Shown here: positions 21 through 41,933 of the stretch, piece after piece
How the letters are laid out: each line of letters begins with the position of its first letter
Numbering within the stretch: position 1 is the stretch's first letter
Sequence record: PP456877.1
Length of the DNA stretch: 64,000 bases
Strand: one strand, 5' to 3'
Program-made: the position numbers and the translations under genes
Notes under the pieces: model-generated
The model's input: the letters and a program-made list of their open reading frames with translations, nothing else
Told to the model about the DNA's origin: nothing
Database searches by the model: none

Positions 21-5351
<5,331 letters not shown>

Positions 5352-8222: not shown

Positions 8223-8248
8223 TGCCGTCTCGACCTTCTTTACTGAGT

Positions 8249-8464
8249 TTAGGAAAAATTGAAAACGATTTCATTATCATGCCATTCCCAGGTGGCCACA
8301 ATGATAGATTCATCACTCCGCTTCAACAGCTTACCCTGACCAAGTACATGTTGGTCGATCCACGTCAGTGGTCGACCTTCTTGTTCGGCCAATGCATTTA
8401 ATACGGCTCCATAAGTACCAGCCTTATAATTACCATAAGGACCATTATACATTTTCATTGACAT
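8249..8464 (-). CDS. Hypothetical protein
   Basis: ORF track; fits minus-strand operon. Confidence 0.7.
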   Translation of the reverse strand: MSMKMYNGPYGNYKAGTYGAVLNALAEQEGRPLTWIDQHVLGQGKLLKRSDESIIVATWEWHDNEIVFNFS

Positions 8465-8541
8465 GAGTTAATTTCCTTTAACAGCTACAAATGGTCTTGT
8501 TACTGAACTCGAAGATTGAATGCATCTTGTCCATGATGACC

Positions 8542-12277: not shown

Positions 12278-12724
12278 CTACTGATTTACACGTTTTTGGT
12301 ATCCCACCATGTAACTTTTATTGAGGTAGCCCTTGATATTACAATCTACCTCCAGTTCATCTGCTGGGAAACCACTACGGATACGTCTACGAATAGCCAG
12401 TAAGATGGATTCAGATTCTTCTGGATCGAACAGATCTACGCCAAAGGTAGTCCAACTATTACCTATTTTGTGCTGATATTCCAGACGTACGGTAGTGCCA
12501 TCCGGTGCGATGAACCAACGTTCGTACTCAGATACGACCATATGACAACCACACTGCCACAAAGTACCTAGTGGATCTTTAGAAGCAAGGATACGTTTGG
12601 TATCATTCTCATCTTGCGATTTCGAATCAGGGCTGGAACAGAGATGGGATAGTAGAAACAGAAGCGATGCTTCGGTGCTATGAGTACACAGCATTGCGCG
12701 GGTGAGGTTTGCATTGATGATCAT
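12278..12724 (-). CDS. Hypothetical protein
   Basis: ORF track; AAAAAGGAAAATACAAATG initiation region. Confidence 0.75.
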   Translation of the reverse strand: MIINANLTRAMLCTHSTEASLLFLLSHLCSSPDSKSQDENDTKRILASKDPLGTLWQCGCHMVVSEYERWFIAPDGTTVRLEYQHKIGNSWTTFGVDLFDPEESESILLAIRRRIRSGFPADELEVDCNIKGYLNKSYMVGYQKRVNQ

Positions 12725-12824
12725 TTGTATTTTCCTTTTTACAGTTTATGAATCTATTGCTAAATAAAAAAATAAGATACAGAAAATAAAAGGGAGTCCG
12801 AAGACTCCCATTATTGCGTGTAAT

Positions 12825-13937
12825 CTATTTGACAATAACCGCTTTAGAAAGAGTTTCCATACTTCCAATAACTAATTTGGATTTCTCTTCTTCAGGGTTC
12901 TCCATAGCTTCATGCAGGAGTTCACCGATGGTTTTGGGTTGAATGTCATCACTGATTTCACGCGAGCAGGCCGCGTCGTCATACATGTCAAACATATTCA
13001 GATCATCATCGTCCAGTGGTGTGCTGTCATTCCATGAATAGCTTGATTCATCTGAGATATAATCAGACCCACTATACTGTTCACGGAGGTCACGGTCCAG
13101 TTCCTCCTCATACATCTTATCCATTTCTTTTTCCTCCATTTCTTGTGCTTTACGGCGTGAAGTTTTGTAAAACGGTAGTAGACGTTGCAGGACTTTATGG
13201 AACTTCTTCTTGCTGATCAACCAACTGATGGAGTAATGGGTTAATTGTACTTCAGCAGCCTTAATGGTCGGATCAGAATACATCGCCGCAATCAGTTTCT
13301 CTAGGTCATAAAGATGGTCTTTTACTGGATCAGCATAAGCTGGATGTTCTTGAAGTGCGAACATTACGAATGTACGCATATCAGTAATAAAGTACTGGTT
13401 GTGATGTTTGTTAATTTCAGCGTAATTTATATCAGTGTAATGATAGTAGACAGATTCTTCCTCACGGGTCAAACTACGGATTTTGGTAGGGCGCGGTCCT
13501 TCCATCCAGTATACAGACGGATGTTTCACACGGGTATTCCAACCATGGGCATGATCGCACGTGGTGGATTCTTCTTTGAACCAAGTGAAGTTACCTTTAC
13601 CACGTTCGAGGATCTTTTTACACCAGCTAATATTGATTGACTTGTTACGATCTTCAGTCAGATCACAGGGTTGATCCAGAACAGCGACATAGCTGTCATG
13701 ACCATTAGCCACGATACCAAGAACGGTAGCTTCGAATGTCTCGTAGCGCTGACCGGGATACACACGTTCATTTTCGTTCAGGAAACGAAGAGAGCAGGAC
13801 TCGAAGATTGCACGGGTGCCAGCAGGGAAATGAGCGCGACCGAAGGGGCTCTCGGCTTTACGTTCCTTGCGACGTTCAATGACCCATTCCAGTTTTTCTT
13901 TGGTCAGACGGGTGACGGGTTCGCGATATTGTTTCAT
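12825..13937 (-). CDS. Early protein with acidic tail; probable phiKZ gp14 homologue (ribosome-associating factor)
   Basis: 370 aa from MKQYREP with strong RBS; assigned by counting genes between DHFR (gp4) and terminase (gp25). Confidence 0.5.
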   Translation of the reverse strand: MKQYREPVTRLTKEKLEWVIERRKERKAESPFGRAHFPAGTRAIFESCSLRFLNENERVYPGQRYETFEATVLGIVANGHDSYVAVLDQPCDLTEDRNKSINISWCKKILERGKGNFTWFKEESTTCDHAHGWNTRVKHPSVYWMEGPRPTKIRSLTREEESVYYHYTDINYAEINKHHNQYFITDMRTFVMFALQEHPAYADPVKDHLYDLEKLIAAMYSDPTIKAAEVQLTHYSISWLISKKKFHKVLQRLLPFYKTSRRKAQEMEEKEMDKMYEEELDRDLREQYSGSDYISDESSYSWNDSTPLDDDDLNMFDMYDDAACSREISDDIQPKTIGELLHEAMENPEEEKSKLVIGSMETLSKAVIVK

Positions 13938-14034
13938 TTGTATTTTCCTTTTTACATTTGGGTTTAATTGAGTACATCTCAATGCATCCTTTTCAAGACA
14001 CATTGAGATGGGGTCTCTTCGGAGACCCCATCTA

Positions 14035-14637
14035 TTATTCCTGGGTCAATTCCCCAAGACGACCTTCAGCTTTCATACGACGGATCTCTGAAATGGACTT
14101 ACCATACTTTGCCGCAAGTTCCTTGACAGTACCTTCCGGAGCAGGTTTACCCATGTCGCGGAAGTTTTGCTTAGCGATGTCGTAGCGTTGTGCCTGAAGA
14201 GTCTTCAACTCAGAACGAACCAAAGCATTACCAAGGAATTGAGAGAGAATTGGCATCACGAAAGATTTCATCTTATCGCGGTACATGTTGACCCATGCAC
14301 AGTATTCATCTACGTGAATGGATGCGTACTCAGCTACTTTAGTATATTCTAAAAAGCCAACAGCATACGGGCCTTGATCAACATAGACCATCTTGTTGAA
14401 AAGAGCTATGCCAATGATCGAGGAGCGCTCTGCTTTTATGAAGGCTAGAGTATCTTCGATGATAATCTTTTCCAGGTCCTTGTACTTAACAGGGTCGTTA
14501 TTGATCAATGCCAACATGGCATCAACCTTTACAGTCAACTTCATGTCTTCATTACGACAATAGACCAGTTTATTGGTCTGTTCTTGGGTGAACACATGGT
14601 CCACGTTTTGGAAGACTTTCGACAGACGACTATCCAT
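14035..14637 (-). CDS. Protein with C-terminal helix-turn-helix
   Basis: TVKELAAKYGKSISEIRRMKAEG at C-terminus. Confidence 0.6.
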   Translation of the reverse strand: MDSRLSKVFQNVDHVFTQEQTNKLVYCRNEDMKLTVKVDAMLALINNDPVKYKDLEKIIIEDTLAFIKAERSSIIGIALFNKMVYVDQGPYAVGFLEYTKVAEYASIHVDEYCAWVNMYRDKMKSFVMPILSQFLGNALVRSELKTLQAQRYDIAKQNFRDMGKPAPEGTVKELAAKYGKSISEIRRMKAEGRLGELTQE

Positions 14638-14814
14638 TTATTTATCCTCATTTACAGTGAATGCAAACATAGTACATTTCGGCTTAGCGGGATGCTGACA
14701 CCATTTCTCTGAAACTTTACCTTCAGGCTTAGTGAGTCCGTAATAGAACTCACCAACTGCCATCGAGAAGCCGATCAGAATTGCAAGAAAACCTACCACT
14801 ATTTTGGTTTTCAC
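14638..14814 (-). CDS. Small membrane-anchored protein missing from track (58 aa)
   Basis: GTG start overlapping upstream stop; MKTKIVVGFLAILIGFSMAVG...WCQHPAKPKC. Confidence 0.6.
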   Translation of the reverse strand: MKTKIVVGFLAILIGFSMAVGEFYYGLTKPEGKVSEKWCQHPAKPKCTMFAFTVNEDK

Positions 14815-15209
14815 TTAGCGATGATCCGTTGTACGAAATGTTGGAGATTTGCAACCAGCCGATTGAACTCTTCCTCGGTCAGCTGATCACGATGAGATTC
14901 CAGAAGTACTTCTACCTCTGGAATGACGTTGAGTGAGATATCCAATTGGATCTGCGAGATGAATTCTGCGACATCCAATCCGATATCACGCCTGAGCCGA
15001 TTCACCAGCTCGCGATGTTGCTCACTGTTACGGTATTCGGTGATCTTATCGATCAGGATGTCCGAGATACTGTTTTCGATCTGTTGTACTTCGGTCGGGC
15101 CTTCCTCTTTGTAAGTTGCCTTTACTGCCAGAATAGCTGCTACTGCGGTAGAGGTAACAGCAACTACAATGAGACCGAGTCCCAGTGCATTTTCTTTAAT
15201 GAAGTTCAT
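14811..15209 (-). CDS. Membrane-anchored helical protein
   Basis: N-terminal hydrophobic segment. Confidence 0.75.
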   Translation of the reverse strand: MNFIKENALGLGLIVVAVTSTAVAAILAVKATYKEEGPTEVQQIENSISDILIDKITEYRNSEQHRELVNRLRRDIGLDVAEFISQIQLDISLNVIPEVEVLLESHRDQLTEEEFNRLVANLQHFVQRIIAK

Positions 15210-15214
15210 GATTA

Positions 15215-15556
15215 TTACCCTTTCAGAGTAGCATCCGAATTGAAGACATCGGGACCAACCGAGAGACTTCCCAGAAGATCCGGAGCAAGGTAAACGGAGT
15301 TGAGGGTTTCGTATACACCGGTAACAGTATCTACGTTAACCAGACTAGAACTACGCAGGGGTACCCATTCACCGTTAAGGAAGGTTTCGCCGACCAGTAC
15401 ACGAACACCATCTACGTCAGTGCGGTTCGGCCATAGATCCTTACCTTCTACTATTTCTACGTTACGAGCATGGTAGACTAGTTTACCATTCATGCGAGCA
15501 ACGATATTCGGACGGCGCAAGTCGTCGACTACTTTAATTGCTACGGACTCTTCCAT
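15215..15556 (-). CDS. Hypothetical protein
   Basis: ORF track. Confidence 0.7.
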   Translation of the reverse strand: MEESVAIKVVDDLRRPNIVARMNGKLVYHARNVEIVEGKDLWPNRTDVDGVRVLVGETFLNGEWVPLRSSSLVNVDTVTGVYETLNSVYLAPDLLGSLSVGPDVFNSDATLKG

Positions 15557-15570
15557 TTTTATACCCTTAT

Positions 15571-15921
15571 TTACACTAAATAATTTACAACACGCAGATT
15601 ATCTTCAGAAGAATAGTTCCAAAGAATTTTACCATAGGTAATTCCATCTAACCATATTTCAATATGTTCTTTCTTAAGATCTGGAATACCCTGATTTATT
15701 TCTTCACCAATAATATCTCTATCGGCAGTAAGGTGATATAATGGTGTGCCGTCGCAATCACGTCCATACCCAAAAACATAAAGACGGGCGCCTGAATGTA
15801 CATCTTCTACCAACTCACCAATAGCGATATTATGGTTTTTAGCCAAATTATTCTCACGTACAGTTTTGCCATTTTCTTCAACAAGATCGCAGACGAGGAT
15901 GACTACATTATCTTTAAGCAT
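15571..15921 (-). CDS. Hypothetical protein
   Basis: ORF track. Confidence 0.75.
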   Translation of the reverse strand: MLKDNVVILVCDLVEENGKTVRENNLAKNHNIAIGELVEDVHSGARLYVFGYGRDCDGTPLYHLTADRDIIGEEINQGIPDLKKEHIEIWLDGITYGKILWNYSSEDNLRVVNYLV

Positions 15922-15947
15922 AATTATTCTCCATTTAATAGCGGTGA

Positions 15948-16103
15948 TTATTTGGTAACGAGAATTTCAACGCCATTAGGGGCGATGCGATGACCCAGTA
16001 CAACTTCTTCTTGAGCAGTAGTCTTAGAACCATTGTCATAGTTGGCATTGATGAACAGACCACCGAATACCATACCAACGACAACCAGGGCAATTGCTTT
16101 CAT
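15948..16103 (-). CDS. Small exported/membrane protein missing from track (51 aa)
   Basis: MKAIALVVVGMVFGGLFINA...; AAGGA RBS. Confidence 0.65.
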   Translation of the reverse strand: MKAIALVVVGMVFGGLFINANYDNGSKTTAQEEVVLGHRIAPNGVEILVTK

Positions 16104-16156
16104 GATGATTTCCTTTGATTAGACTGCTTCGAGGTTATTGAGATAAGCTATCGGTA

Positions 16157-27503: not shown

Positions 27504-27588
27504 GCCCGAATGGTGAAATTGGTAAACACAGAAGACTTAAAATCTTCCGGCTACGGTCTTGTCGGTTCGAATCCGACTTCGGGCACCA
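27504..27588 (+). tRNA. tRNA-Leu(TAA)
   Basis: Cloverleaf with long variable arm; GAAGA-CTTAAAA-TCTTC; encoded CCA. Confidence 0.96.
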
Positions 27589-27597
27589 ATTTAAATA

Positions 27598-27673
27598 CGG
27601 AGTGTAGCGCAGTTGGTAGCGCGCCTGCTTTGGGAGCAGGATGTCGGGAGTTCGAGTCTCCCCACTCCGACCA
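27598..27673 (+). tRNA. tRNA-Pro(TGG)
   Basis: CCTGC-TTTGGGA-GCAGG anticodon arm; CCA. Confidence 0.96.
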
Positions 27674-27694
27674 TTTTAATAATAGGTAAATAGG

Positions 27695-27988
27695 ATGGAT
27701 AATAAATGGATATCATGGGAACATCAAATTATAGGAACAGCTCTTTACGCTATTCTTAGTGACCCTGAATTAACTAATATTCAATTAGCTCAAGGCTTAC
27801 ACTATCTAACAGAAGCAAAGTCTTCTGTATTACATGTTTGTAATAACCATATTACATTCACTGTAACCTATCCACATGGCACATTTAGAACCAATGTAAT
27901 TAGAGAGTGCCCTGCTAGTGATACAAATACATTCAAATGGTCAGGTGTATTAGTCCGTCAAAAAGATGGAACATTCTTACCAGAATAA
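27695..27988 (+). CDS. Hypothetical protein
   Basis: ORF track; lies between tRNAs. Confidence 0.7.
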   Translation: MDNKWISWEHQIIGTALYAILSDPELTNIQLAQGLHYLTEAKSSVLHVCNNHITFTVTYPHGTFRTNVIRECPASDTNTFKWSGVLVRQKDGTFLPE

Positions 27989-27995
27989 ATAAAAA

Positions 27996-28072
27996 GGGCC
28001 TATAGCTCAGTTGGTTAGAGCAGGCGACTCATAATCGCTTGGTCGCAGGTTCAAGTCCTGCTGGGCCCACCA
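27996..28072 (+). tRNA. tRNA with CAT anticodon, Ile2-type (lysidine) rather than Met
   Basis: GCAGGCGACTCATAATCGCTTGGTCGC core closely resembles enterobacterial tRNA-Ile2; CCA. Confidence 0.85.
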
Positions 28073-28088
28073 TATACTAGCCTCCCAC

Positions 28089-28346
28089 TTGGGGGAGGTT
28101 TTATACTGTCTCATTGAGGAAAACATGAATACAGTAATAATGTTGGTATTATCTATCAAAGTTGGATTATTTGGTTTCATTTCGACTAATGAAAGTAATA
28201 TCCTATTTGAAAATAGGGAACAGTGTATTTCTCATCTGGATATTCTGGAACATAAATACAAGTCTCTTGAAGTTATTCGAAATGAGAATACTCTAAAGAT
28301 AACCGAAAGAGATAACCATTCTATTTATATTTTTAAATGTCTCTAG
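28089..28346 (+). CDS. Small exported/membrane protein (start likely MNTVIML)
   Basis: GAGGA RBS before internal ATG; hydrophobic N-terminus. Confidence 0.65.
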   Translation: MGEVLYCLIEENMNTVIMLVLSIKVGLFGFISTNESNILFENREQCISHLDILEHKYKSLEVIRNENTLKITERDNHSIYIFKCL

Positions 28347-28642
28347 GAAAATACATGGAACATCAAGAACAAAAAGAACTATTGAGACAACCATTACAAA
28401 CACTTTATAATCTTACTTTTAGTCCCCGTTTACGTAATGGAGCGAAGGCTCCCGATTGGATTCACCTGACCGATGAAGTAACCCTATTCCCAAACGGATT
28501 AGATATTACAATCAACGCTGTTACACGTTGCATCAAATGGGAACTTATCGGCGAGGATGTAAGTAACATTACTTATGTTGAAGCTATGTTCTTTAATAAA
28601 GGTCTTAAAGCAGTTAAAGCCTATCTCAAACATACGGAGTAA
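28337..28642 (+). CDS. Hypothetical protein
   Basis: ORF track. Confidence 0.7.
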   Translation: MSLGKYMEHQEQKELLRQPLQTLYNLTFSPRLRNGAKAPDWIHLTDEVTLFPNGLDITINAVTRCIKWELIGEDVSNITYVEAMFFNKGLKAVKAYLKHTE

Positions 28643-28644
28643 AT

Positions 28645-28992
28645 ATGGATCATCTAACCCCAACGCAGAGCGCTGTATATTTCACATTTATTAGCCCTGA
28701 GTTTATAAAGCTAACTCTTGTTGAATCTTTTGTAGCGATCCACAAGAAACATCCAGAAGTAAAGCATTGCGTTAAGAAAAAGATTAGTGCTAATGAAACG
28801 CAGTTTATCTTTATCTTCAAAGATGGGACTGATAATTTAATCATTACACGTAAAACTGAACCTTGCCCTGAACTGGATAGCCCAGTAGGCGATAGTATTA
28901 AGTTGTCCGGCGAAGAACTTAAAAATATTCTTGCTAAGTACGATCGTCCCAAGGATGGTAACTATTTCAAGCACTGGACTGATCGCCCGTAA
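28645..28992 (+). CDS. Hypothetical protein
   Basis: ORF track; GGAG RBS. Confidence 0.75.
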   Translation: MDHLTPTQSAVYFTFISPEFIKLTLVESFVAIHKKHPEVKHCVKKKISANETQFIFIFKDGTDNLIITRKTEPCPELDSPVGDSIKLSGEELKNILAKYDRPKDGNYFKHWTDRP

Positions 28993-29044
28993 TAAAATAT
29001 TACTGGTTATGTAATACTATGTAGGAAGTCATGTCCATACGTTT

Positions 29045-29121
29045 GCGCTCATAGTTCAGTTGGTTAGAATACCCGCCTGTCACGCGGGTGGTCAGGGGTT
29101 CGAGTCCCCTTGGGCGCGCCA
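29045..29121 (+). tRNA. tRNA-Asp(GTC)
   Basis: CCCGC-CTGTCAC-GCGGG; CCA. Confidence 0.96.
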
Positions 29122-29127
29122 TTTAAT

Positions 29128-29203
<76 letters not shown>

Positions 29204-29287
29204 TATTCTAAAGAGTAGCTTCGGCTACTCTTTTATGTTGCCATGGGTTATCTTATGAATTAAAATGATTTACTTGAGAGCACACTC

Positions 29288-30301
29288 ATGTTTGAATTAC
29301 TATTAGCAACTAGTGGTAAAATAAAGCCAGTTGAATTAGTACAATATATCGGTTATGAAAAAATAGCTGACCTGGATATTCCGTTACATGGTTCTATCCC
29401 TTATATTTGGAACGATAAACTATTCGTTAAGGGTGGCGGTACAGATGTTAGTTCTAGTGATCCAGGATTACGCAGGTTTAAATTAGATGGTACGTTTGAG
29501 AATAATAAGAATTTAAGCAACTACATCTATCATACGAATCCAGCGCAAGACTCACGAACTGGTAGAGTTTATTTAATCAACGGTAGGTCTAATGGTAGCT
29601 GGAGTTCTAGCGTGGTCCATGCCATAGATGCTTCTGCGGAGACTATAACTAATCTTGGTTGGAGCACTCCTCGTGGGAACTATGGTAACTCCACGGTATT
29701 TGACGAAGATAACAACAGAATTTACGTCCAATTCCACGATAGTAATCAGTTCGGTTATTACACAACCGATGGCGTCTATCATAACAGCCCGAAAGGCTTT
29801 CCTGCTGCTAGTCTAAGTGGTGCTTTTATATTCAAACATAAAGGCTACATTTACGTGATGGGTGGATGGGGATCCAGTGTTGCATCAAATCCGGATCACC
29901 TGGCGAAATTCGATGCTGGGACAGCAATGACGACAATCATGAGAATGTCGATTTATACACAATTGTGGGAAGTGTACGATATATTACCTACCGAATACCA
30001 TGGTGGTAACCAGGGCGCCGGTAACTACCATGAAGGTATCTTCAGCTATATTAGCTGGAGTGGTAGTAAACTCGGTGCGGTTCGCTATGATGTGTCTGGT
30101 AAAAGATTTATTCGTTTTGATACGGGTATTAGCTATCGCAACGCGACCGGTGTGGTTGGTAATAAAGGAGAGCTGTATCTGGTTGGTGGATGTTCAATTC
30201 CGTTGGGCTCGACTAACCCACCGTTCGGTAGAAAGGCAGAAACGAAGACAGAAATATACAAGTTCATCCTTCCTGCTCCACTACCACCAAGTGATAAGTA
30301 G
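29288..30301 (+). CDS. Kelch-repeat beta-propeller protein 1
   Basis: LFVKGG, YIYVMGGW, LYLVGG repeats; MFELLL N-terminus. Confidence 0.8.
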   Translation: MFELLLATSGKIKPVELVQYIGYEKIADLDIPLHGSIPYIWNDKLFVKGGGTDVSSSDPGLRRFKLDGTFENNKNLSNYIYHTNPAQDSRTGRVYLINGRSNGSWSSSVVHAIDASAETITNLGWSTPRGNYGNSTVFDEDNNRIYVQFHDSNQFGYYTTDGVYHNSPKGFPAASLSGAFIFKHKGYIYVMGGWGSSVASNPDHLAKFDAGTAMTTIMRMSIYTQLWEVYDILPTEYHGGNQGAGNYHEGIFSYISWSGSKLGAVRYDVSGKRFIRFDTGISYRNATGVVGNKGELYLVGGCSIPLGSTNPPFGRKAETKTEIYKFILPAPLPPSDK

Positions 30302-30453
30302 GTGTTACGTACACCAATGCTAGAACCTCACAGAGGGGCAGGGTACCTTAGTATTGGTAACAGTCTTTACACCTTATAAAGGCAGCCATTTGGCTGCCTT
30401 TATGCCGTTACCGTTTATCTTATGACTTAACTGTATTACTTGAGAATATACTC

Positions 30454-31461
30454 ATGTTTGAATTACTATTATCGCCAGATATAGGCGAAGAGTTACCCTT
30501 GGTTGGATTTAATGAAATTATTAAATTAGGTGATCTACCTGTAGCGTTAGCTGGTACAATGTCATATGTGGATGGAAATACACTGTATGTTGGATCTGGT
30601 CATCATACTGAAGGACAAACAGCTGCAACTGTGTTCAGACGTTTTACCATATCGCCATTTGCCGATATAGGTGCAACTGCTTCTGGAACATTCTTACCAG
30701 GGGTATCTTTAGGATTTGGGACATTACATAAGAATAACTTTATTGTTTATGGCGGTATTACTGGATGGAACTCGGCTGGTAATGGTGGTACGGGAACATC
30801 TAACTTTATACAACATTTTGATATAGCTACAGGCAATAGGGTTGAGCGATATAGTGGTCCCGTACCACTTTGGGGCACAGCCTCCGCATCAGATGGTAAT
30901 GATCTTATTATGTGTGTTAACCCAGTTGGGGTAAATGCAATGCGGTTAAAACCATCGGGTAAGACATGGCTTAGTGGGCAAGATTATTCAGGTGGTGCTC
31001 GTTCAGGTCAACAGTTATTCTTTTATAATGGTTACTTTTACCATTTTGGTGGTTGGGATAATACAAAGAACATACCTAATCTTGAAGTTTATCGATATAA
31101 TGCAACTACCTTAATATGGGAGCAAACACCTTGGATGATTATACCTGCTGATAAAGGAACAATCTGGCAAGGTAATGGTTATGTAGATGGGGACTATTTT
31201 AATTACCTTAACGCTGTTGATGTCGGCGGTGTAACTAAAATGTTTGCACAACGTTTTAATATTAGGCGCCGGAAATGGGCTGAACCATTTGAACTAGGTA
31301 TCGGATTCCTTAATATTTCATCTATAGCTAAAGGTCCGGATAATAGCATGATCATTGTAGGTGGATCTAAAATGCCAGTTGGTGGTGGAGCATATATGTT
31401 GAAAAGCCAATTGTTATCAGGTATCTATCAGGTAAAACTAGCGCCATTAATCATTGATTAA
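30454..31461 (+). CDS. Kelch-repeat beta-propeller protein 2
   Basis: FIVYGG, FYHFGGW, MIIVGG repeats; MFELLL N-terminus. Confidence 0.8.
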   Translation: MFELLLSPDIGEELPLVGFNEIIKLGDLPVALAGTMSYVDGNTLYVGSGHHTEGQTAATVFRRFTISPFADIGATASGTFLPGVSLGFGTLHKNNFIVYGGITGWNSAGNGGTGTSNFIQHFDIATGNRVERYSGPVPLWGTASASDGNDLIMCVNPVGVNAMRLKPSGKTWLSGQDYSGGARSGQQLFFYNGYFYHFGGWDNTKNIPNLEVYRYNATTLIWEQTPWMIIPADKGTIWQGNGYVDGDYFNYLNAVDVGGVTKMFAQRFNIRRRKWAEPFELGIGFLNISSIAKGPDNSMIIVGGSKMPVGGGAYMLKSQLLSGIYQVKLAPLIID

Positions 31462-31513
31462 AATAATAATATTTATAACTATTTAGATAATTATACTGGC
31501 ACGATGATATTAT

Positions 31514-31625
31514 GTAAGAGTACTATAATAAAGTATTCTTAAATCTATCCACTAAACACACTCGGTGGTAGAACTTATTATAGAGTGTGTCTAAATGCCA
31601 GGGGTTTGCCACCCCTGGTTATATT
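31514..31625 (+). ncRNA. Candidate compact structured RNA (kissing loop plus pseudoknot)
   Basis: TATGTA start; complementary loops ATAATAA / TTATTAT; terminal CCAGGGG/CCCCTGG hairpin. Confidence 0.55.
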
Positions 31626-31745
31626 CATTGTTACTATTATAAATTCATTTATAGATGAGAAAAGGTTTTATCACCTTTTCAAAATCGGCATTTAATTCCA
31701 GTTAAAAAACTGAATCTATGCTACATTGTAATAAAGGAGTCTATT

Positions 31746-32258
31746 ATGACTAACTCTAATCCGTTTGTAAGAACTATTGTAAAGTACCAAGATATCCTAG
31801 ATGCTTTAATTCAAAAAACGAATGAGAACTGGGTTAATTATCGATCTAATTCTATTGGTCATATTGTTATTCGTGAATACAGGACTGTTGGATTATTTGT
31901 AGGTCGGCAATGTGGTAGTACAACTGCATTGATTGAGTTTGCTAATCGTCACCCTGGCGAATGTCTAGCTGTATTTGTAGAAGATAAAATTAAACAGGCT
32001 GTACTGGCTAAGTTCCAGAATGCTAAAGATAATATTGTTTCTTGTTTAATTACACACCAACTCCGCAAATATATTCATCAACCTGAAGAATCATCTATTC
32101 AAAAAGATATTAAAGAAGAATTAATATCGTCTGTAAAATATATTCTTGTTGACAATGCCTCATTTAATCTGAACCTACGCGGTATCACTGATAAAGAATT
32201 TAACCAGTGGGTTGCAGATACTTTTGGTACAGAGGTAATGGTGGTTCGTTTTAGTTAG
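31746..32258 (+). CDS. Hypothetical protein with degenerate P-loop-like motif
   Basis: LFVGRQCGSTT ... ILVDN. Confidence 0.65.
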   Translation: MTNSNPFVRTIVKYQDILDALIQKTNENWVNYRSNSIGHIVIREYRTVGLFVGRQCGSTTALIEFANRHPGECLAVFVEDKIKQAVLAKFQNAKDNIVSCLITHQLRKYIHQPEESSIQKDIKEELISSVKYILVDNASFNLNLRGITDKEFNQWVADTFGTEVMVVRFS

Positions 32259-32419
32259 AATTAGTAACTTTGATAGTTTCTAATAAGATTAACTACACGT
32301 TATTTACATAATGTCATAACAAGAAATAAATAATACTCAGATTGTAATAATATGTAGTTATTACATATCTATATTAGGTTGTCAGTAACTCATCTCTAAT
32401 ATAAAATCGCCATAATTCT

Positions 32420-32495
<76 letters not shown>

Positions 32496-32626
32496 ATTCA
32501 TAGTTTTAGATTTAGTTATATTTCACTACTATGTAAACTATAAAGGCAGCATTAGCTGCCTTTATGTCGTCTTGTAAAAGTACCCAGTAGTTGAATCTTA
32601 TAGCTGAATACAAATAGGGTAAAGAC

Positions 32627-32812
32627 ATGTCACTTAAAGCATTGCAAGATATAGTTAGTAGTGTTCCTACAAATGAACAAAAGGAACGATTAGTTAAAGT
32701 TCGGAAAACGATGGAAGAGCTAAATGAGTCTATTAAGAATCAGATTCGTAATAAACGACCTAGTCAAGCTCTTCTCGACAAAACGATAAACTGGGGTACC
32801 AAGTATGGCTAA
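32627..32812 (+). CDS. Small coiled-coil protein
   Basis: ORF track. Confidence 0.65.
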   Translation: MSLKALQDIVSSVPTNEQKERLVKVRKTMEELNESIKNQIRNKRPSQALLDKTINWGTKYG

Positions 32813-33095
32813 GACATTAGTTCGTGCAAAGCTGATTACCGAAGCTGGTCAATGGATGTCGTCTGACTGGGAATGTGGTTTCCGTGCATGTCGATTCGTG
32901 AAACTTGGTAATGATCATGTAAACATAAAAGACTTTGAGGCTATGATCACGGCATTCGAAGTTGGTGACATGTTAGTGATTTGGCCAAATGGGCTTAGAA
33001 CTTCGTATAGTGTGGATAATTTCAATAAGTACTTTTCCCATATCAAAGATGAATACCATGAGACTGATCTCCGTCCACTCTTTTACCCCAAGTAG
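32805..33095 (+). CDS. Hypothetical protein
   Basis: ORF track; overlaps upstream stop. Confidence 0.7.
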   Translation: MAKTLVRAKLITEAGQWMSSDWECGFRACRFVKLGNDHVNIKDFEAMITAFEVGDMLVIWPNGLRTSYSVDNFNKYFSHIKDEYHETDLRPLFYPK

Positions 33096-33566
33096 TTGAG
33101 CTTATGATAACTATATTCGTGTATAAATACATTACATTCGTTATACCCTTTAATTGATTGAAATCAAGCTACATAAAAGTGATTGAATGGTCCATGTAGG
33201 TGATAATTTTAATAAAGGTAAAGGATTTATCAGAGAATATCTCAGTGCATTTAGGTATTTTATCACTCGCCTATCTAAATCACATAAAGCCCTTTACCGA
33301 GGAATGTGAGAATGTTGGTTGCGATTGATAATACTGGGACATAATATGATGTCGACCCAACTGATGAAGTAGACGTAATGTTTGTATTTAGACCCACACT
33401 AAAATAACTTTATATGACTTAATACCCCTCTATATAGAGTGGTCTATTTATAAGTAAAATTATACATAGAGTTAATATTATTTGTAGATTAGTTCTACAC
33501 ATAACTCAACTTGAAACCGGGTGTTAATAAAATTTAACACTACGGAAAACATAAAGGTGTATAAAA

Positions 33567-34196
33567 ATGGCTTTTCATTTTACTGAAGTAGATTTAAATG
33601 ATTTTATCAATGAATCAGGTAAAGACTTAAAAATAAATGTTGGTAAACAAACACTAGCAGTTTATGATATCGATAGGCTAAATATTGTTAATTCAACTAT
33701 TAATAAACTAGTTTATAATGAACCTATAAGTGAAGAACACATAGATGCATCACTTACAGATAATTCATTAAAAGAGCTTAATGATTATTTACTAAATGTT
33801 GGTGTTACTGAAAGCGCTAAAATGATGATTGATGCTGTGTTAGAATTAAGCGATTATCATAAAAGTGATGAATACTTTAACCCAATGATGTATAAATTAA
33901 AAAGTATGCACACTAAAAATACAGATGGTGTTTATTTGATATTTTTACCAACGCCTACTATCGATGATCAAATTAACACCATGCAAGGGTATATTATCAA
34001 TAAATCCGGTAATCTCATTAGGACTACTGTACAGTCATGGCGATTTGAGAAAATTGAATTCAAAGACTTAGCCAAACATGATAGACGTTGGTTATTTATT
34101 GAATATTACATTAATGTTAAACAAACGAAAAATAATATAATCAAAGAGCAACAAGATGAATTAACTAAATTTATTTATTATAGTACTCTAAGTTAA
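33567..34196 (+). CDS. Hypothetical protein
   Basis: ORF track. Confidence 0.7.
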   Translation: MAFHFTEVDLNDFINESGKDLKINVGKQTLAVYDIDRLNIVNSTINKLVYNEPISEEHIDASLTDNSLKELNDYLLNVGVTESAKMMIDAVLELSDYHKSDEYFNPMMYKLKSMHTKNTDGVYLIFLPTPTIDDQINTMQGYIINKSGNLIRTTVQSWRFEKIEFKDLAKHDRRWLFIEYYINVKQTKNNIIKEQQDELTKFIYYSTLS

Positions 34197-34252
34197 AACA
34201 AATAAAAAATAAATATAAGAGCTAGCCCCTAATGGGCTAGCTTTATGTTATC

Positions 34253-34390
34253 TTACTCTGCTACATCTTTTACATCAGGTTTATTATTCCAACGTACTGC
34301 TCTCGCAATACCATACGTAAGAATAAGAGCACCCACGGTGCCAATAGTGGTGCTAATAATAATGCCAAGAGTTTTTGGATCAATATTCAT
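34253..34390 (-). CDS. Small single-TM early protein missing from track (45 aa)
   Basis: MNIDPKTLGIIISTTIGTVGALILTYGIAR...; AGGA RBS; own early promoter; hairpin downstream. Confidence 0.65.
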   Translation of the reverse strand: MNIDPKTLGIIISTTIGTVGALILTYGIARAVRWNNKPDVKDVAE

Positions 34391-34437
34391 ATTTAGTATC
34401 CTATTTACAATTAATAGAAAATATTACTTTTAGTAAT

Positions 34438-34476
34438 ATCACATTTGTAATATACCTTTTAAATAGGTTTGAATAT
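34438..34476 (-). promoter_or_regulatory. Early promoter
   Basis: TATTCAAACCTATTTAAAAGGTATATTACAAATGTG. Confidence 0.85.
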
Positions 34477-34538
34477 AACTTTATTTATTATAATAAATTA
34501 AAATAATACTTTCATATACACTATATGTAGAAGATTAC

Positions 34539-34615
34539 GCCGCTATAGCTCAGCTAGGTAGAGCAACGCACTTGTAATGCGTAGGTCCTCCGTTCGATTC
34601 GGAGTGGCGGCACCA
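34539..34615 (+). tRNA. tRNA-Thr(TGT)
   Basis: ACGCA-CTTGTAA-TGCGT; CCA. Confidence 0.96.
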
Positions 34616-36755: not shown

Positions 36756-37286
36756 TTAGACGGTGTATAAACCCTCAGTATTACATGTTGTTATGATATT
36801 GTAAAGACGATGCCAATAGCGATCATACGTATTTTTACGTTTGTAGCTATTGGTGCGGATGACTAGATTGGCGACCCAGTGATTCTGATCAATGGTCTCA
36901 TGTAGATGCCCGAAATAAGCCCCCAGTTCAATTTCGAATGGGATCTTACACTCACGCCCCTTACACATTGCTACACGCAATAAACGCATTGCAGAATTCT
37001 CTGCATTGGTATCTTTAAATAAAAGACTAATGTATCCAGGGCTACCACCAGTTTCTTCATCAACATGGCCTGAACAGCAATAAATAGTTGCAACATTGGT
37101 AAATTGATTAAACCATTTAATTAATGGCCTACATGCTTCATCAATAAGATCTTCATATTCAGGTTTATACATTACTTTAACAGTATCATCTGCACGTTGT
37201 TTCACATGATGAAAATATTGCTCCCAATTTACATTAGTGTAATATAGCATATCCATATTAGAATTACTCATACAAATCAACCCCAT
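36756..37286 (-). CDS. Tyw3-like protein
   Basis: IDEACRPLIKWFNQF..VATIYCCSGH..GYISL resembles the TYW3 TxSSCSGR region. Confidence 0.5.
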   Translation of the reverse strand: MGLICMSNSNMDMLYYTNVNWEQYFHHVKQRADDTVKVMYKPEYEDLIDEACRPLIKWFNQFTNVATIYCCSGHVDEETGGSPGYISLLFKDTNAENSAMRLLRVAMCKGRECKIPFEIELGAYFGHLHETIDQNHWVANLVIRTNSYKRKNTYDRYWHRLYNIITTCNTEGLYTV

Positions 37287-38008
37287 ATGTTATTGGCATA
37301 TTCGCGGTCATTGAAAATGCGGGTAAGATCCATCCGCTTTTGAATGCGCGCTAGTATCCATTTTAGTTGTTTAGTTGATAGTTCTTGATTTTGCTTGTAT
37401 TCACCTGTAGCATGGATGTAATAATCAAATTTACGACTTACAGTAGTAGTATGTGCACATGCAATAGCAAATGCTTCAAGTGCAGTTAGTTTGGTTGATC
37501 CATTATCATTACAATTAGGGATAAACTCAAGTACACTATTAACTGCATCTACACCACTACCCAAATGAGCCCAATCTTTCTTGGTGATGTTGATACCCAT
37601 GTCTTTAAGAATAACTGTATATATGTCACCATTCTCCATAGTGAACATCATAGAAGTATTACCATTAAACAACCTGCGTTCTATGACTGGCAAGATATTT
37701 ACTTCAACTTTAAACCAATCAGCTAAATCAACACCTGCGGTAAGGGCATTCAATAGATCATAAACATTATCTATAGTTCCAGCAAAAGCCATAGTTTTAA
37801 CACGTTTACCTTGCCAAGTAACTGTCGGATGAAAAATTATCTTGTGGCAATCATTGTAATATACATCTACACCTTCAGCTTTAGCAGTTAGATCAATATA
37901 ACCGTTATCTAATACTGGAAGTCGCCCAATGCTATCAGTTGCATTATTCCGCTCAATTAATAGGCAGTCTGCAATCATGACTTTACCATCATTTACGATA
38001 TATGTCAT
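37277..38008 (-). CDS. Ntn-hydrolase (HslV/proteasome-beta-like) protein
   Basis: M-TYIVNDGKVMIAD start after GGAG RBS; FAG, LGSG, ALEAFAIA motifs. Confidence 0.65.
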   Translation of the reverse strand: MTYIVNDGKVMIADCLLIERNNATDSIGRLPVLDNGYIDLTAKAEGVDVYYNDCHKIIFHPTVTWQGKRVKTMAFAGTIDNVYDLLNALTAGVDLADWFKVEVNILPVIERRLFNGNTSMMFTMENGDIYTVILKDMGINITKKDWAHLGSGVDAVNSVLEFIPNCNDNGSTKLTALEAFAIACAHTTTVSRKFDYYIHATGEYKQNQELSTKQLKWILARIQKRMDLTRIFNDREYANNIWG

Positions 38009-38046
38009 TTTCACTCCTTATAATAAAATAAATAGGCTTAAGCGAA

Positions 38047-38447
38047 ATAAAGCCCTCCCGAAGGAGGGCAGGGGTTTAATAGATGGGCATCCCAAAGTCG
38101 GCCAACTTGGAACATACTCGATAATACTGGATCACCAGTATGATCGCCTCCGTCCCTATGGGATAGTTCCACGCCTTACTGCTAAAGGACTAAAGTCTCA
38201 ATAACAAGTCTGACTTATCTTAACTGTGGCACCACCCAACTTGTTAAGATCATCCGGTTTGTGCAGTTTGGTTTTCTACACAGCTAGCGTTTTCACACGC
38301 CGATGTACCCTCAATACGGATACACCACTATTAACACCGTAAGCTCATTAGTATTCAGAATAAGTGGGATCTCGGCGGCACCTTCATTTGCGGACGGGAA
38401 CGCTGAAGGGAGATAGTCCGGGAGATCCCGATTTGGGTATTCTTTAC
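38047..38447 (-). ncRNA. Candidate large (~400 nt) multi-domain structured RNA
   Basis: TATGTA start, paired 5'/3' ends, at least 8 helices including an H-type pseudoknot, UUCG terminator, no credible ORF. Confidence 0.65.
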
Positions 38448-38455
38448 ATATGGTA

Positions 38456-38836
38456 TTACTGCAAGTATTTGTTCCCCGCAGTATAATCACCATTGATCCA
38501 ATTTTTGATTACAACACTGATCCCTTCATTTTCTTTAACGGTAACCCCCAACTCAAGATCGATTGATTGATAAGCTACAGCAGCCAGTGTTAACCGAAGA
38601 TAAACGGATCCATCTTTTTCGATATCGTAGGATACTACGAACCCGTCTTGTAGATTTTGTAGCTGGAATGTATTAGCATGTTGTGGGTGGAGACGATCCA
38701 TATTGTACTCGACGACATCTAGTAGATATTGCCGAGCATCAGCAGCATTATCAAATCCGAGATCGCACAGACCGATCGGATAGCGAGCTTGCGTGCATGT
38801 AACTTTCATAGATACTACACGATGTTGTTTGCACAT
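38456..38836 (-). CDS. Hypothetical protein
   Basis: ORF track; GAGGA RBS. Confidence 0.7.
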   Translation of the reverse strand: MCKQHRVVSMKVTCTQARYPIGLCDLGFDNAADARQYLLDVVEYNMDRLHPQHANTFQLQNLQDGFVVSYDIEKDGSVYLRLTLAAVAYQSIDLELGVTVKENEGISVVIKNWINGDYTAGNKYLQ

Positions 38837-38977
38837 TATATTTTCCTCTTAGATGTCAAAAACCCTCCCCGATCAGGGGAGGGTATCTCATTGGTACTTC
38901 TTCAGCAAAACTGAAACTAAGATAAAAGAGCAATCGTAAAGGAACTACATAGAATAGTGTATTTCTTTTACTATTTT

Positions 38978-40406: not shown

Positions 40407-41933
40407 TTAATATTTCAATAGACTATTGATAAAAGCATTAGGGTCATAACGGTTATTTGAAAAAGCCGCCATTACATCACACCCTGGCTGATCTTTAAAT
40501 CTGATATCTTCAGGAATATCGAAGTCAGGGAACATTAGTTTAATATACTCCCTAACTTCTTGATCTCGTAGATATGGAATCTCCACCATGTAATCAACGC
40601 GACCTTTCCTTAGAAGTGCTTTATCAATATTCTCAGGATGGTTTGTAGTTAGAATGGTCATAGTCTCATCTAGTGGAACAATGCCATCTAGCCCATTTAA
40701 TAGAGCTGACAAAGTTAATCCGCTAGCTGGTTGTTCATACGTGATTCCATTCTTCATGCACTTCTTTAATTTCCACCATCGGCGAATTGTAGTAAATAAT
40801 GGATCTTTTTCATCGGCCCATTTTGAAACACCCAGTTCAGCCATAGCATAAGCACTTATCCCAAAACCTTGATCATCGCTATTTTCATCAAAGATATAGA
40901 TGGTGTCATTAAACCCAACTACAGAGTATCCTTCATAGTCATCTTTAAGATCAACCCATGCAGACGGATATTTTTCAATTAAATCAATAAAAGAATATTT
41001 CCTCTCTAATTCCTTTATCTCTTTATCTAGTTTTACAGGATCATTTAAAACACGATCTTTAACTGCCGGGGTATCATCGAAATCTTCAATTAGAAGAATA
41101 TTACCTTTAGGTAGTGTAGTAAATGCCCGCCTAAGACTATCATTGGTCATAGAGGCTAATGACAGTGCACTAACATTTTTATTAAAATGTGAGGCAATCG
41201 CTTTACTGATTGAGGTTTTACCAGTACCAGGAGGACCTGTTAGAACACAAGTGAATTTATAGGGTAGTCCACGATCATCGTACCATTTCCGATCAGAATA
41301 GAATTCTTCAATCTTATTAAGGAATTCTTCTTTGATCTCTTTACGCAAAATCACCGTGTTGATATCGCGTTTAGTAACTTCAATCTCATTGCCCCAACGG
41401 TTACCATCCCAATGTGAAATAGTCAGACCCCTTTCATTTGGGCGCCAATGGTAAGCATCTACTAAATCAATAATTAGTTTACTACTCCTAGATAATCCAC
41501 GGATAGTAATATCCATTTGATCTCGACTGGCATTTTGACTATCCCGGCGTGCTTTTACAAACCAGAATAACCTACCTTTAAACAGAAAGAAATGTAAGCC
41601 AAAACCAACACCAATTTTCTGTTTAGTTGCACTATAACTTTGCTCATCAACATTAGTTGAAAAACGTCGATTAAATCCAGCTAATGGCTGCTTAATATAC
41701 CATTCCATGAAACAATCAAAGTTCTTCTCGTTCAGCCCATTACCCATGTTGGTAATATGTAGACTAACTGTAAACTGATTTAATGCGAACCTAGCTAGTT
41801 TACTTGGTAAGCCTCTTAGAGTGGTCCAGAATAAACCACCAATTGCCATTCCGATAGCTCCACCCATAACCATATTCTTCTGAGAGATATCGATGAACAT
41901 GGCGTAATATTGCAATAAGGTTTCTATAATCAT
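40407..41933 (-). CDS. Membrane-anchored BCS1-like AAA+ ATPase
   Basis: N-terminal TM; GPPGTGKT; LLIEDFD; LTLSALLNGLDG; TTNHPENIDKALLRKGRVD; RGLPYK. Confidence 0.88.
   Translation of the reverse strand: MIIETLLQYYAMFIDISQKNMVMGGAIGMAIGGLFWTTLRGLPSKLARFALNQFTVSLHITNMGNGLNEKNFDCFMEWYIKQPLAGFNRRFSTNVDEQSYSATKQKIGVGFGLHFFLFKGRLFWFVKARRDSQNASRDQMDITIRGLSRSSKLIIDLVDAYHWRPNERGLTISHWDGNRWGNEIEVTKRDINTVILRKEIKEEFLNKIEEFYSDRKWYDDRGLPYKFTCVLTGPPGTGKTSISKAIASHFNKNVSALSLASMTNDSLRRAFTTLPKGNILLIEDFDDTPAVKDRVLNDPVKLDKEIKELERKYSFIDLIEKYPSAWVDLKDDYEGYSVVGFNDTIYIFDENSDDQGFGISAYAMAELGVSKWADEKDPLFTTIRRWWKLKKCMKNGITYEQPASGLTLSALLNGLDGIVPLDETMTILTTNHPENIDKALLRKGRVDYMVEIPYLRDQEVREYIKLMFPDFDIPEDIRFKDQPGCDVMAAFSNNRYDPNAFINSLLKY

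Follow-up and report, generated by a model that had tools for sequence, protein, structure and literature searches.

A long variant of a candidate phage leader RNA in Pseudomonas phage vB_Pae3705-KEN49, three quarters of it an orphan insertion

The KEN49 locus described here is a long variant of a published candidate phage leader RNA, and three quarters of it consist of an orphan insertion found in one genome. Its first ~90 nt form a real structured motif that is conserved across phiKZ-like Pseudomonas jumbo phages, and the locus as a whole is probably a strain-specific long allele of the small leader RNA that these phages share. A 120-nt ncRNA candidate was already known from phiKZ; what is new is the recognition of its core as a covarying motif that lacks an Rfam match.

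The locus and its predicted transcript

The DNA analysed here, a stretch of 64,000 nt referred to as the window, comes from Pseudomonas phage vB_Pae3705-KEN49 (PP456877.1, genus Phikzvirus), and its coordinates are those of the record. The phage was obtained on the host strain MRSN 3705. The region in question, to which the original prediction, made from the sequence by itself, had assigned a single structured RNA of ~400 nt, lies on the minus strand and fills the non-coding interval that separates the PHIKZ288 homologue from that of PHIKZ289. This gap measures 447 nt in KEN49 and 166 nt in phiKZ, so that KEN49 carries 281 extra nt. The main elements of the locus are the following:

38456-38836, minus strand: PHIKZ288 homologue, the upstream gene, 126 aa, function unknown; the phiKZ transcripts of this gene end at terminator T119
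38447-38496, minus strand: promoter region, identical in the phiKZ alignment to middle promoter P130 (...CAGTAATACCATATGT), itself mapped by ONT-cappable-seq
38045-38446, minus strand: predicted 402-nt transcript, from the homologue of the phiKZ transcription start site (TSS) to the U-tract of the terminator, with coordinates transferred from phiKZ TU198 (263172-263292), TU195 and TU197
38045-38069, minus strand: intrinsic terminator GCCCUCC-UUCG-GGAGGGC followed by UUUAUUU, homologue of phiKZ T119, with its hairpin at 38069-38052 and a stem 1 bp shorter than in phiKZ
37277-38008, minus strand: PHIKZ289 homologue, the downstream gene, 243 aa, with a weak match to the HslV-family peptidases (phrog_1040, E = 5e-5)

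Thanks to an ONT-cappable-seq study of phiKZ, the TSS of middle promoter P130 is placed at 263172 and the termination site (TTS) of intrinsic terminator T119 at 263292 (Putzeys et al., bioRxiv 10.1101/2023.10.13.562163; microLife 2024, PMC10914365). The 120-nt unit running from P130 to T119, TU198, is listed there as a "5'UTR-derived ncRNA candidate" of PHIKZ289, in an entry that gives its boundaries and fold energy only and holds no conserved structure, relatives or Northern blot (PMC10914365). Read-through past T119 runs into PHIKZ289, short terminated and read-through transcripts both being seen, and the same terminator also ends the PHIKZ288 transcripts TU195 and TU197 (PMC10914365).

The KEN49 locus resembles that of TU198 in its promoter and the initial 92 nt of its RNA, which are identical to phiKZ in the alignment, in its homologous terminator and in its flanking genes; it differs in the 281 nt added between the motif and the terminator, in a duplicated tail block, and in an altered spacer and terminator stem. 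By transfer from phiKZ, an RNA of 402 nt running from 38446 to 38045 is predicted for KEN49, in good agreement with the discrete non-coding transcript of ~400 nt that had been proposed at 38447-38047, and this RNA would double as the 3'UTR of the gp288 mRNAs and the 5' leader of gp289. Both proposed ends are likewise borne out: the start had been set at TATGTA, where the TATGT is identical to that of P130, whose TSS corresponds to window position 38446, and the UUCG terminator at the other end is the GCCCTCC-TTCG-GGAGGGC hairpin with its U-tract at 38069-38045.

In phiKZ-like jumbo phages a conserved UUUAUGCCG(U), which takes the form UUUAUUUCG in the phiKZ group, comes after the terminator hairpins. 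Such sites are found in the window at 38042-38051 (minus strand), in the homologous sequences L017, L018, L019, L024, L025, L027 and L029, and at phiKZ T120; their presence even at an unrelated terminator suggests that they may be a phage-specific termination signal. A further observation concerns the stretch at 38858-38947 (minus strand), which is the homologue of a second phiKZ "5'UTR-derived ncRNA candidate", namely the 89-nt leader of PHIKZ288 with its TSS at 262671, terminator T118 and final hairpin CCCTCCCCTGATCGGGGAGGG.

No credible ORF was found in the 447-nt gap, where all frames are interrupted and none stays open across the insert. GenBank annotates two small CDS over the RNA, KEN49_CDS0068 (38038-38172, minus strand) and KEN49_CDS0069 (38311-38493, minus strand), both of which are singletons in an exact look-up among ~15 billion proteins and are probably not real genes. 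Given the lack of an open frame through the insert and the singleton status of the two annotated mini-CDS, the coding explanation was dropped, in line with the earlier description of the region as non-coding. As for base composition, the GC content is 0.44-0.46 in the region, 0.34-0.40 in the downstream gene and 0.41-0.45 in the upstream gene; the claim that the region is GC-richer than its flanks is thus right with respect to the downstream side, whereas the upstream gene is about equal.

When the whole window was searched against Rfam (4227 models) at gathering score, no match was obtained at the locus, and a cmscan of 37950-38550 on both strands at E<=10 returned only a terminator-like match to rnk_pseudo. 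No family of Rfam 15 (RNase P, tmRNA, 6S, GOLLD, ROOL, HEARO, OLE, small ribozymes and riboswitches) was recognised, and ARAGORN reported no tRNA or tmRNA in the region. These searches agree with the original description of an RNA of unrecognised class, devoid of a tRNA-like end, an RNase P P4 or a complete group I core. With GOLLD, ROOL, HEARO, RNase P, tmRNA and 6S the locus has in common that it stands out from an AT-rich phage genome as a large non-coding island of raised GC content; it differs from them in that no model matches and in that the KEN49 long form occurs in one genome only.

A covarying motif in the first ~90 nt

The 5' part of the RNA comprises two elements:

38430-38446, minus strand: single-stranded 5' tail UAAAGAAUACCCAAAUC
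38366-38429, minus strand: conserved leader motif, an irregular hairpin of helices P1-P4, identified by covariation in 11 sequences and by the covariance model R1

The helices of this leader are P1 (GGGAUCUC/GAGAUCCC), P2 (CGG/CCG), P2a (UAUC/GGUG), P3 (UUCA/UGAA) and P4 (GCG/CGC), with lengths in the 11-sequence alignment of 8 bp for P1, 3 for P2, 4 for P2a, 3 for P3 and 3-4 for P4. Several blocks are invariant in the alignments, namely the unpaired AUCUCCC bulge, the UUCCCGUC loop (family form UWCCCGUC), GGUGC and the CCACCUAUU tail. The tail block reads CCCACCUAUU in the phiKZ group, and none of the 11 relatives departs from its 9-nt core, CCACCUAUU.

The motif recurs in eight further sequence variants: T2P, RVTF4, Psa21, D6 and four contigs from IMG/VR. 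With gp289 as the query, tblastn led to distant homologues in RVTF4 (74% identity) and in Psa21 and D6 (39%), and the homologous element is present upstream of every distant gp289 homologue found, the motif lying ~200 nt upstream of the gene. The four IMG/VR variants, all in large contigs, were retrieved with a pattern built from the invariant blocks of the motif. The link to the downstream HslV/Ntn-like gene that had been suspected is thus seen in distant phages too. Further searches were empty: no Rfam family matched the leader motif, relaxed motif patterns returned no additional members from IMG/VR, the 17 pattern matches in GTDB genomes all looked random, and the nine matches of a motif 20-mer in metagenomes were unrelated and coding.

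Across the 11 sequences, 94.6% of the cells are paired and compensatory changes occur in 13 of the 22 pairs; the covariation score is 0.547, against at most 0.10 in controls with slid partners, and none of 500 shuffles reaches the observed value. This signal is carried by about 7 independent lineages, so that support is good, not deep. With the covariance model R1, the KEN49 motif scores 75.5 bits (E = 5e-16), and within the window R1 finds one full motif, its second match consisting of the duplicated tail and the terminator only. Each homologue folded singly gives the same hairpin together with a terminator hairpin, and KEN49 shares with the PHIKZ289-leader family the helices, the invariant AUCUCCC bulge, UWCCCGUC loop and GGUGC, a TATGT-type promoter and synteny.

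Two of the helices drawn in the original prediction are accordingly real and covary in relatives, namely the outer stem GGGAUCUC/GAGAUCCC and the CCUUCA/UGAAGG helix. The second stem of the proposed pseudoknot, CGGAC/GUCCG, fares differently: it displays zero compensatory change, equals the shuffle controls and clashes with the covarying P2 and P4.

Outside the phiKZ group, from which it is missing, a small hydrophobic ORF (56-77 aa, with a shared E(L/I)RYxL) separates the leader RNA from the gp289 homologue. It occupies 1271-1504 in L017, 1334-1504 in L018, 1286-1504 in L019 and about 2015-2185 (minus strand) in L025, an IMG/VR contig in which membrane ORFs are present and a gp289 homologue is absent. 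P1 and the ACC tail together resemble an acceptor stem with ACCA, and a weak R1 match (18 bits) at 27988-28116 (plus strand) corresponds to a tRNA and its terminator.

The KEN49-specific insert

The remaining part of the RNA, up to the spacer that precedes the terminator, is made up as follows:

38359-38368, minus strand: first copy of the tail block, CCCACUUAUU, directly 3' of P1
38088-38358, minus strand: KEN49-specific non-coding insert, 271 nt, 44.6% GC, absent in 45 other phiKZ-like records
38078-38087, minus strand: second copy of the tail block, CCCAUCUAUU, 8 nt upstream of the terminator, the native spacing being 5-9 nt

The 281 extra nt thus consist of 271 unique nt and a duplicated 10-nt CCCAYYUAUU block (copies at 38368-38359 and 38087-38078). 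The insert sits exactly inside the invariant tail block, leaving one copy by P1 and the other before the terminator; the rule in the family is a single CCACCUAUU tail with the terminator 5-9 nt further on, whereas KEN49 has two, each with one C>U change. In blastn, the 45 other phiKZ-like records, including KEN19 and KEN51, match the first 97 nt of the query only, and the same records reach 97% query coverage over 10 kb. KEN19 and KEN51 come from the same isolation effort as KEN49, judging by accession and name series. The notion of one coherent 400-nt RNA class does not survive this comparison, as only the first ~90 nt are conserved and covarying and the other 271 nt occur in one genome.

The surroundings of the insert are altered as well. 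The adjoining spacer and terminator stem differ from those of phiKZ, the stem being shorter by one compensated base pair, and the SNPs with respect to phiKZ number 4 in the 2.5 kb upstream and amount to roughly 2-3% downstream, the latter figure being an estimate from the SNP list. The changed spacer and terminator, together with this shift in SNP density, are read as the mark of an imported diverged allele and not of a fresh, clean insertion.

Searches with the insert gave only chance matches of 23-49 nt in blastn against phages at E<=10, no match in blastn against plasmids and against E. coli genomes, two chance matches of 18-19 nt among exact k-mers in IMG/VR, and nothing in a k-mer scan of one JGI metagenome. 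Its pseudo-ORFs are singletons in a protein-cluster look-up, and no paralogue of the insert occurs within the window. A second copy of the motif hidden in the insert was also considered and rejected: R1 was negative, and the local alignment was reached by 388 of 500 shuffles. Complementarity of the insert to the conserved loop or bulge of the motif was not significant either.

Relative to shuffles, the 271 nt fold with z = -2.3 in the sense and -1.6 in the antisense orientation, and a 411-nt stretch with z = -2.9; three hairpins only are robust in the ensemble of the insert (38282-38260, 38250-38217 and 38145-38120). Since the insert is known from a single genome and has no homologue, covariation cannot test its structure. 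The earlier statement that size and complexity are typical of ribozymes or RNP scaffolds goes back to the thermodynamic fold of one sequence, and several of the other helices then proposed, UACGG/CCGUA, CAUCGG/CCGGAUG and GGAAC/GUUCC, showed ensemble probabilities of at most 5% (in an ungapped check in which three helices were mis-indexed). Nothing indicates catalysis, and a role as a ribozyme or an RNP scaffold is unsupported.

A long-range pairing had also been proposed to close the whole RNA, between the following two strands:

38428-38437, minus strand: 5' strand of the closing helix, CCCAAAUCGG, overlapping P1 by two G
38091-38101, minus strand: 3' strand of the closing helix, CCGACUUUGGG, where the insert has its 3' end

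The complementarity as such stands, with 10 bp and a bulge at -13.1 kcal/mol, but the helix competes with P1, as its two shared G belong to the invariant base of that stem, and its ensemble probability is about 1%. By chance, 7.5% of shuffles give a duplex of this strength somewhere in the insert, and 0.55% do so within its last 30 nt. The closing helix is therefore a lead, not a finding; the match between the 5' tail and the 3' end hints that the insert may be functionally integrated and more than a passenger.

Origin of the insert and possible role of the leader

Several other origins have to be weighed against an imported allele. Interruption of an invariant block in a structured RNA is what would be expected of an intron, and an ORF-less self-splicing intron of 271-281 nt, either group I-like or of a new type, whose excision would restore the ~120-nt RNA, would fit the size (about 250-300 nt in ORF-less group I introns), the higher GC content and the stable, compact predicted fold; one register even gives GAGAU| ... 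GGGAUG|, with possible U and G boundaries, and excision at these would bring back the order of P1, block, spacer and terminator. Yet no model of group I or any other ribozyme matches at E<=10 on either strand, and the P3/P7/P8 pseudoknot core with its G-binding site could not be placed by hand, the CAUCGG/CCGGAUG pairing leaving no room for a P7 strand, so that no catalytic core is recognisable. The first 70 nt of the insert contain no guide for GAGAU, the only guide-like exon match of 7 bp (GAUAAGU) lies 139 nt inside the insert, where ~0.3 are expected by chance, and a flanking 10-nt duplication of the target is not a feature of intron insertion; an intron is accordingly quite unlikely. The direct repeats, which match in 8 of 10 positions, would suit a non-autonomous transposable element, either a MITE or a PATE-like element of the IS200/IS605 type, that duplicates or mimics its target CCCAYYTATT, and the element would be non-coding, 271 nt long and furnished with subterminal hairpins. 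Such an element would nevertheless lack terminal inverted repeats, its ends CTGAATAC... and ...TTTGGGATG being unrelated; neither the window nor the KEN49 record contains more than one copy, searches of phages, plasmids, E. coli genomes, IMG/VR and one JGI metagenome brought up no relatives, and no transposase is annotated over the region in a near-identical sister phage. The imperfect repeats and the altered spacer and terminator fit an imported diverged allele better, and we regard transposition as unlikely. A misassembled or chimeric KEN49 sequence, suggested by the occurrence of the insert in a single deposited genome, is the most improbable of these readings: the junctions fall in a 10-nt imperfect repeat that is too short to mislead an assembler, the compensated 1-bp change in the terminator stem is typical of a natural allele, and no vector, plasmid or E. 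coli sequence matches.

The view from which the analysis set out, that of one coherent, ancient ribozyme or RNP scaffold of ~400 nt, would turn the 120-nt forms into deletions between the direct repeats. The repeats could indeed mediate such a deletion, and two further points speak in its favour: the positionally unlikely complementarity by which the insert's 3' end matches the 5' tail, and the stability of the overall fold. However, the short form, with the same architecture, is found in all of the other ~7 lineages, including those with a gp289 identity of 39%, and is thus ancestral by parsimony; moreover, the closing helix has to compete with G-C pairs of P1 that are invariant, and for three quarters of the RNA there is no homologue and hence no covariation. 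We therefore hold an ancient 400-nt RNA to be very unlikely. A separate idea takes the insert as a previously unseen, ORF-less mobile structured RNA, self-splicing or RNA-guided, that would target CCACCUAUU and pair through its 3' end with the 5' tail of the leader. It is a long shot that keeps some plausibility owing to the exact insertion site, the positionally unlikely terminal complementarity and the lack of a match to any known family. As the insert is known from one genome, no claim of a new RNA class is made yet.

The preferred reading, a strain-specific long allele of a conserved small leader RNA, can be set out step by step. On the evidence above or by sequence identity with phiKZ, a TATGT middle promoter starts the RNA, its first ~90 nt adopt the irregular hairpin of four helices, and an intrinsic terminator comes next. 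In KEN49, the whole patch of insert, spacer and terminator may have entered through recombination with a diverged relative so far unsampled, although a donor lineage was not found; the insert would be transcribed as part of the RNA, which would thereby reach about 402 nt. Motif and terminator should still fold independently: their base-pair probabilities are at least 0.95 in the 402-nt fold, which means that on paper the insert does not disturb them. With its duplicated tail block, the long allele would keep both the P1-tail and the tail-terminator contexts, so that the insert could be tolerated as an add-on structured module, possibly a neutral one.

As to the leader itself, it would mostly terminate and thereby yield a stable small RNA of two hairpins. 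Its C-rich bulge, loop and tail form a putative binding surface for a trans-acting protein or a G-rich RNA, and such a partner might set how often transcription continues into the downstream gene, or else how stable the small RNA is. Read-through would presumably feed the downstream membrane-ORF and HslV-like genes. In its order of promoter, covarying domain with invariant unpaired nucleotides, intrinsic terminator, RBS and ORF, the locus resembles a terminating riboswitch or attenuator; it differs in that no Rfam riboswitch matches, no antiterminator is conserved, and the distance between sensor and terminator is extended by 281 nt in KEN49. A classical terminator-type riboswitch was accordingly set aside: an aptamer-like domain is present, but in nine lineages the complementarity of the terminator 5' arm to the upstream RNA is no better than in shuffles, and without a conserved antiterminator pairing a classical switch is not supported. 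A pure analogy may also be drawn with phage RNA elements whose action on RNA polymerase takes place ahead of a terminator, such as HK022 put and the EAR kind of processive-antitermination RNA, as the motif would likewise be a promoter-proximal structured phage RNA just before a terminator. One difference is that the middle genes of phiKZ are transcribed by a phage RNA polymerase.

RNA-based regulation is little known in this group of phages, and a motif spread across several genera of Pseudomonas jumbo phages is a tangible candidate for a regulatory RNA specific to phages, which might act as a leader or attenuator or, together with a protein partner, as a stable small RNA. KEN49 can be regarded as a natural "insertion mutant" of this motif, for which KEN19 and KEN51, being without the insert, offer a ready-made comparison.

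A literature search on gp288, gp289 and KEN49 gave nothing relevant besides the ONT-cappable-seq tables. Concerning the wider neighbourhood, the gene after gp289 (36756-37286, minus strand) owes its earlier "Tyw3-like" name to a sub-threshold Pfam match (18.3 bits where the cut-off is 27, E = 0.0016), on which the suggested link of the RNA to a Tyw3-like gene also depends; that link is not supported. Upstream, a gene of 508 aa (40407-41933, minus strand) encodes a BCS1-like AAA+ ATPase (E = 1.5e-16), and seven tRNA genes are clustered on the opposite strand at 27504-34612 (plus strand), a few kb from the locus. KEN49 also carries an extra gene of 337 aa at 29288-30301 (plus strand), absent in the sister phage KEN51, which is a paralogue of the adjoining 335-aa gene (30454-31461), whose counterpart in KEN51 is annotated as a virion structural protein. 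Further differences between KEN49 and KEN51 are located at 8241-8527, 12311-15562 (81% identity) and 15562-16155.
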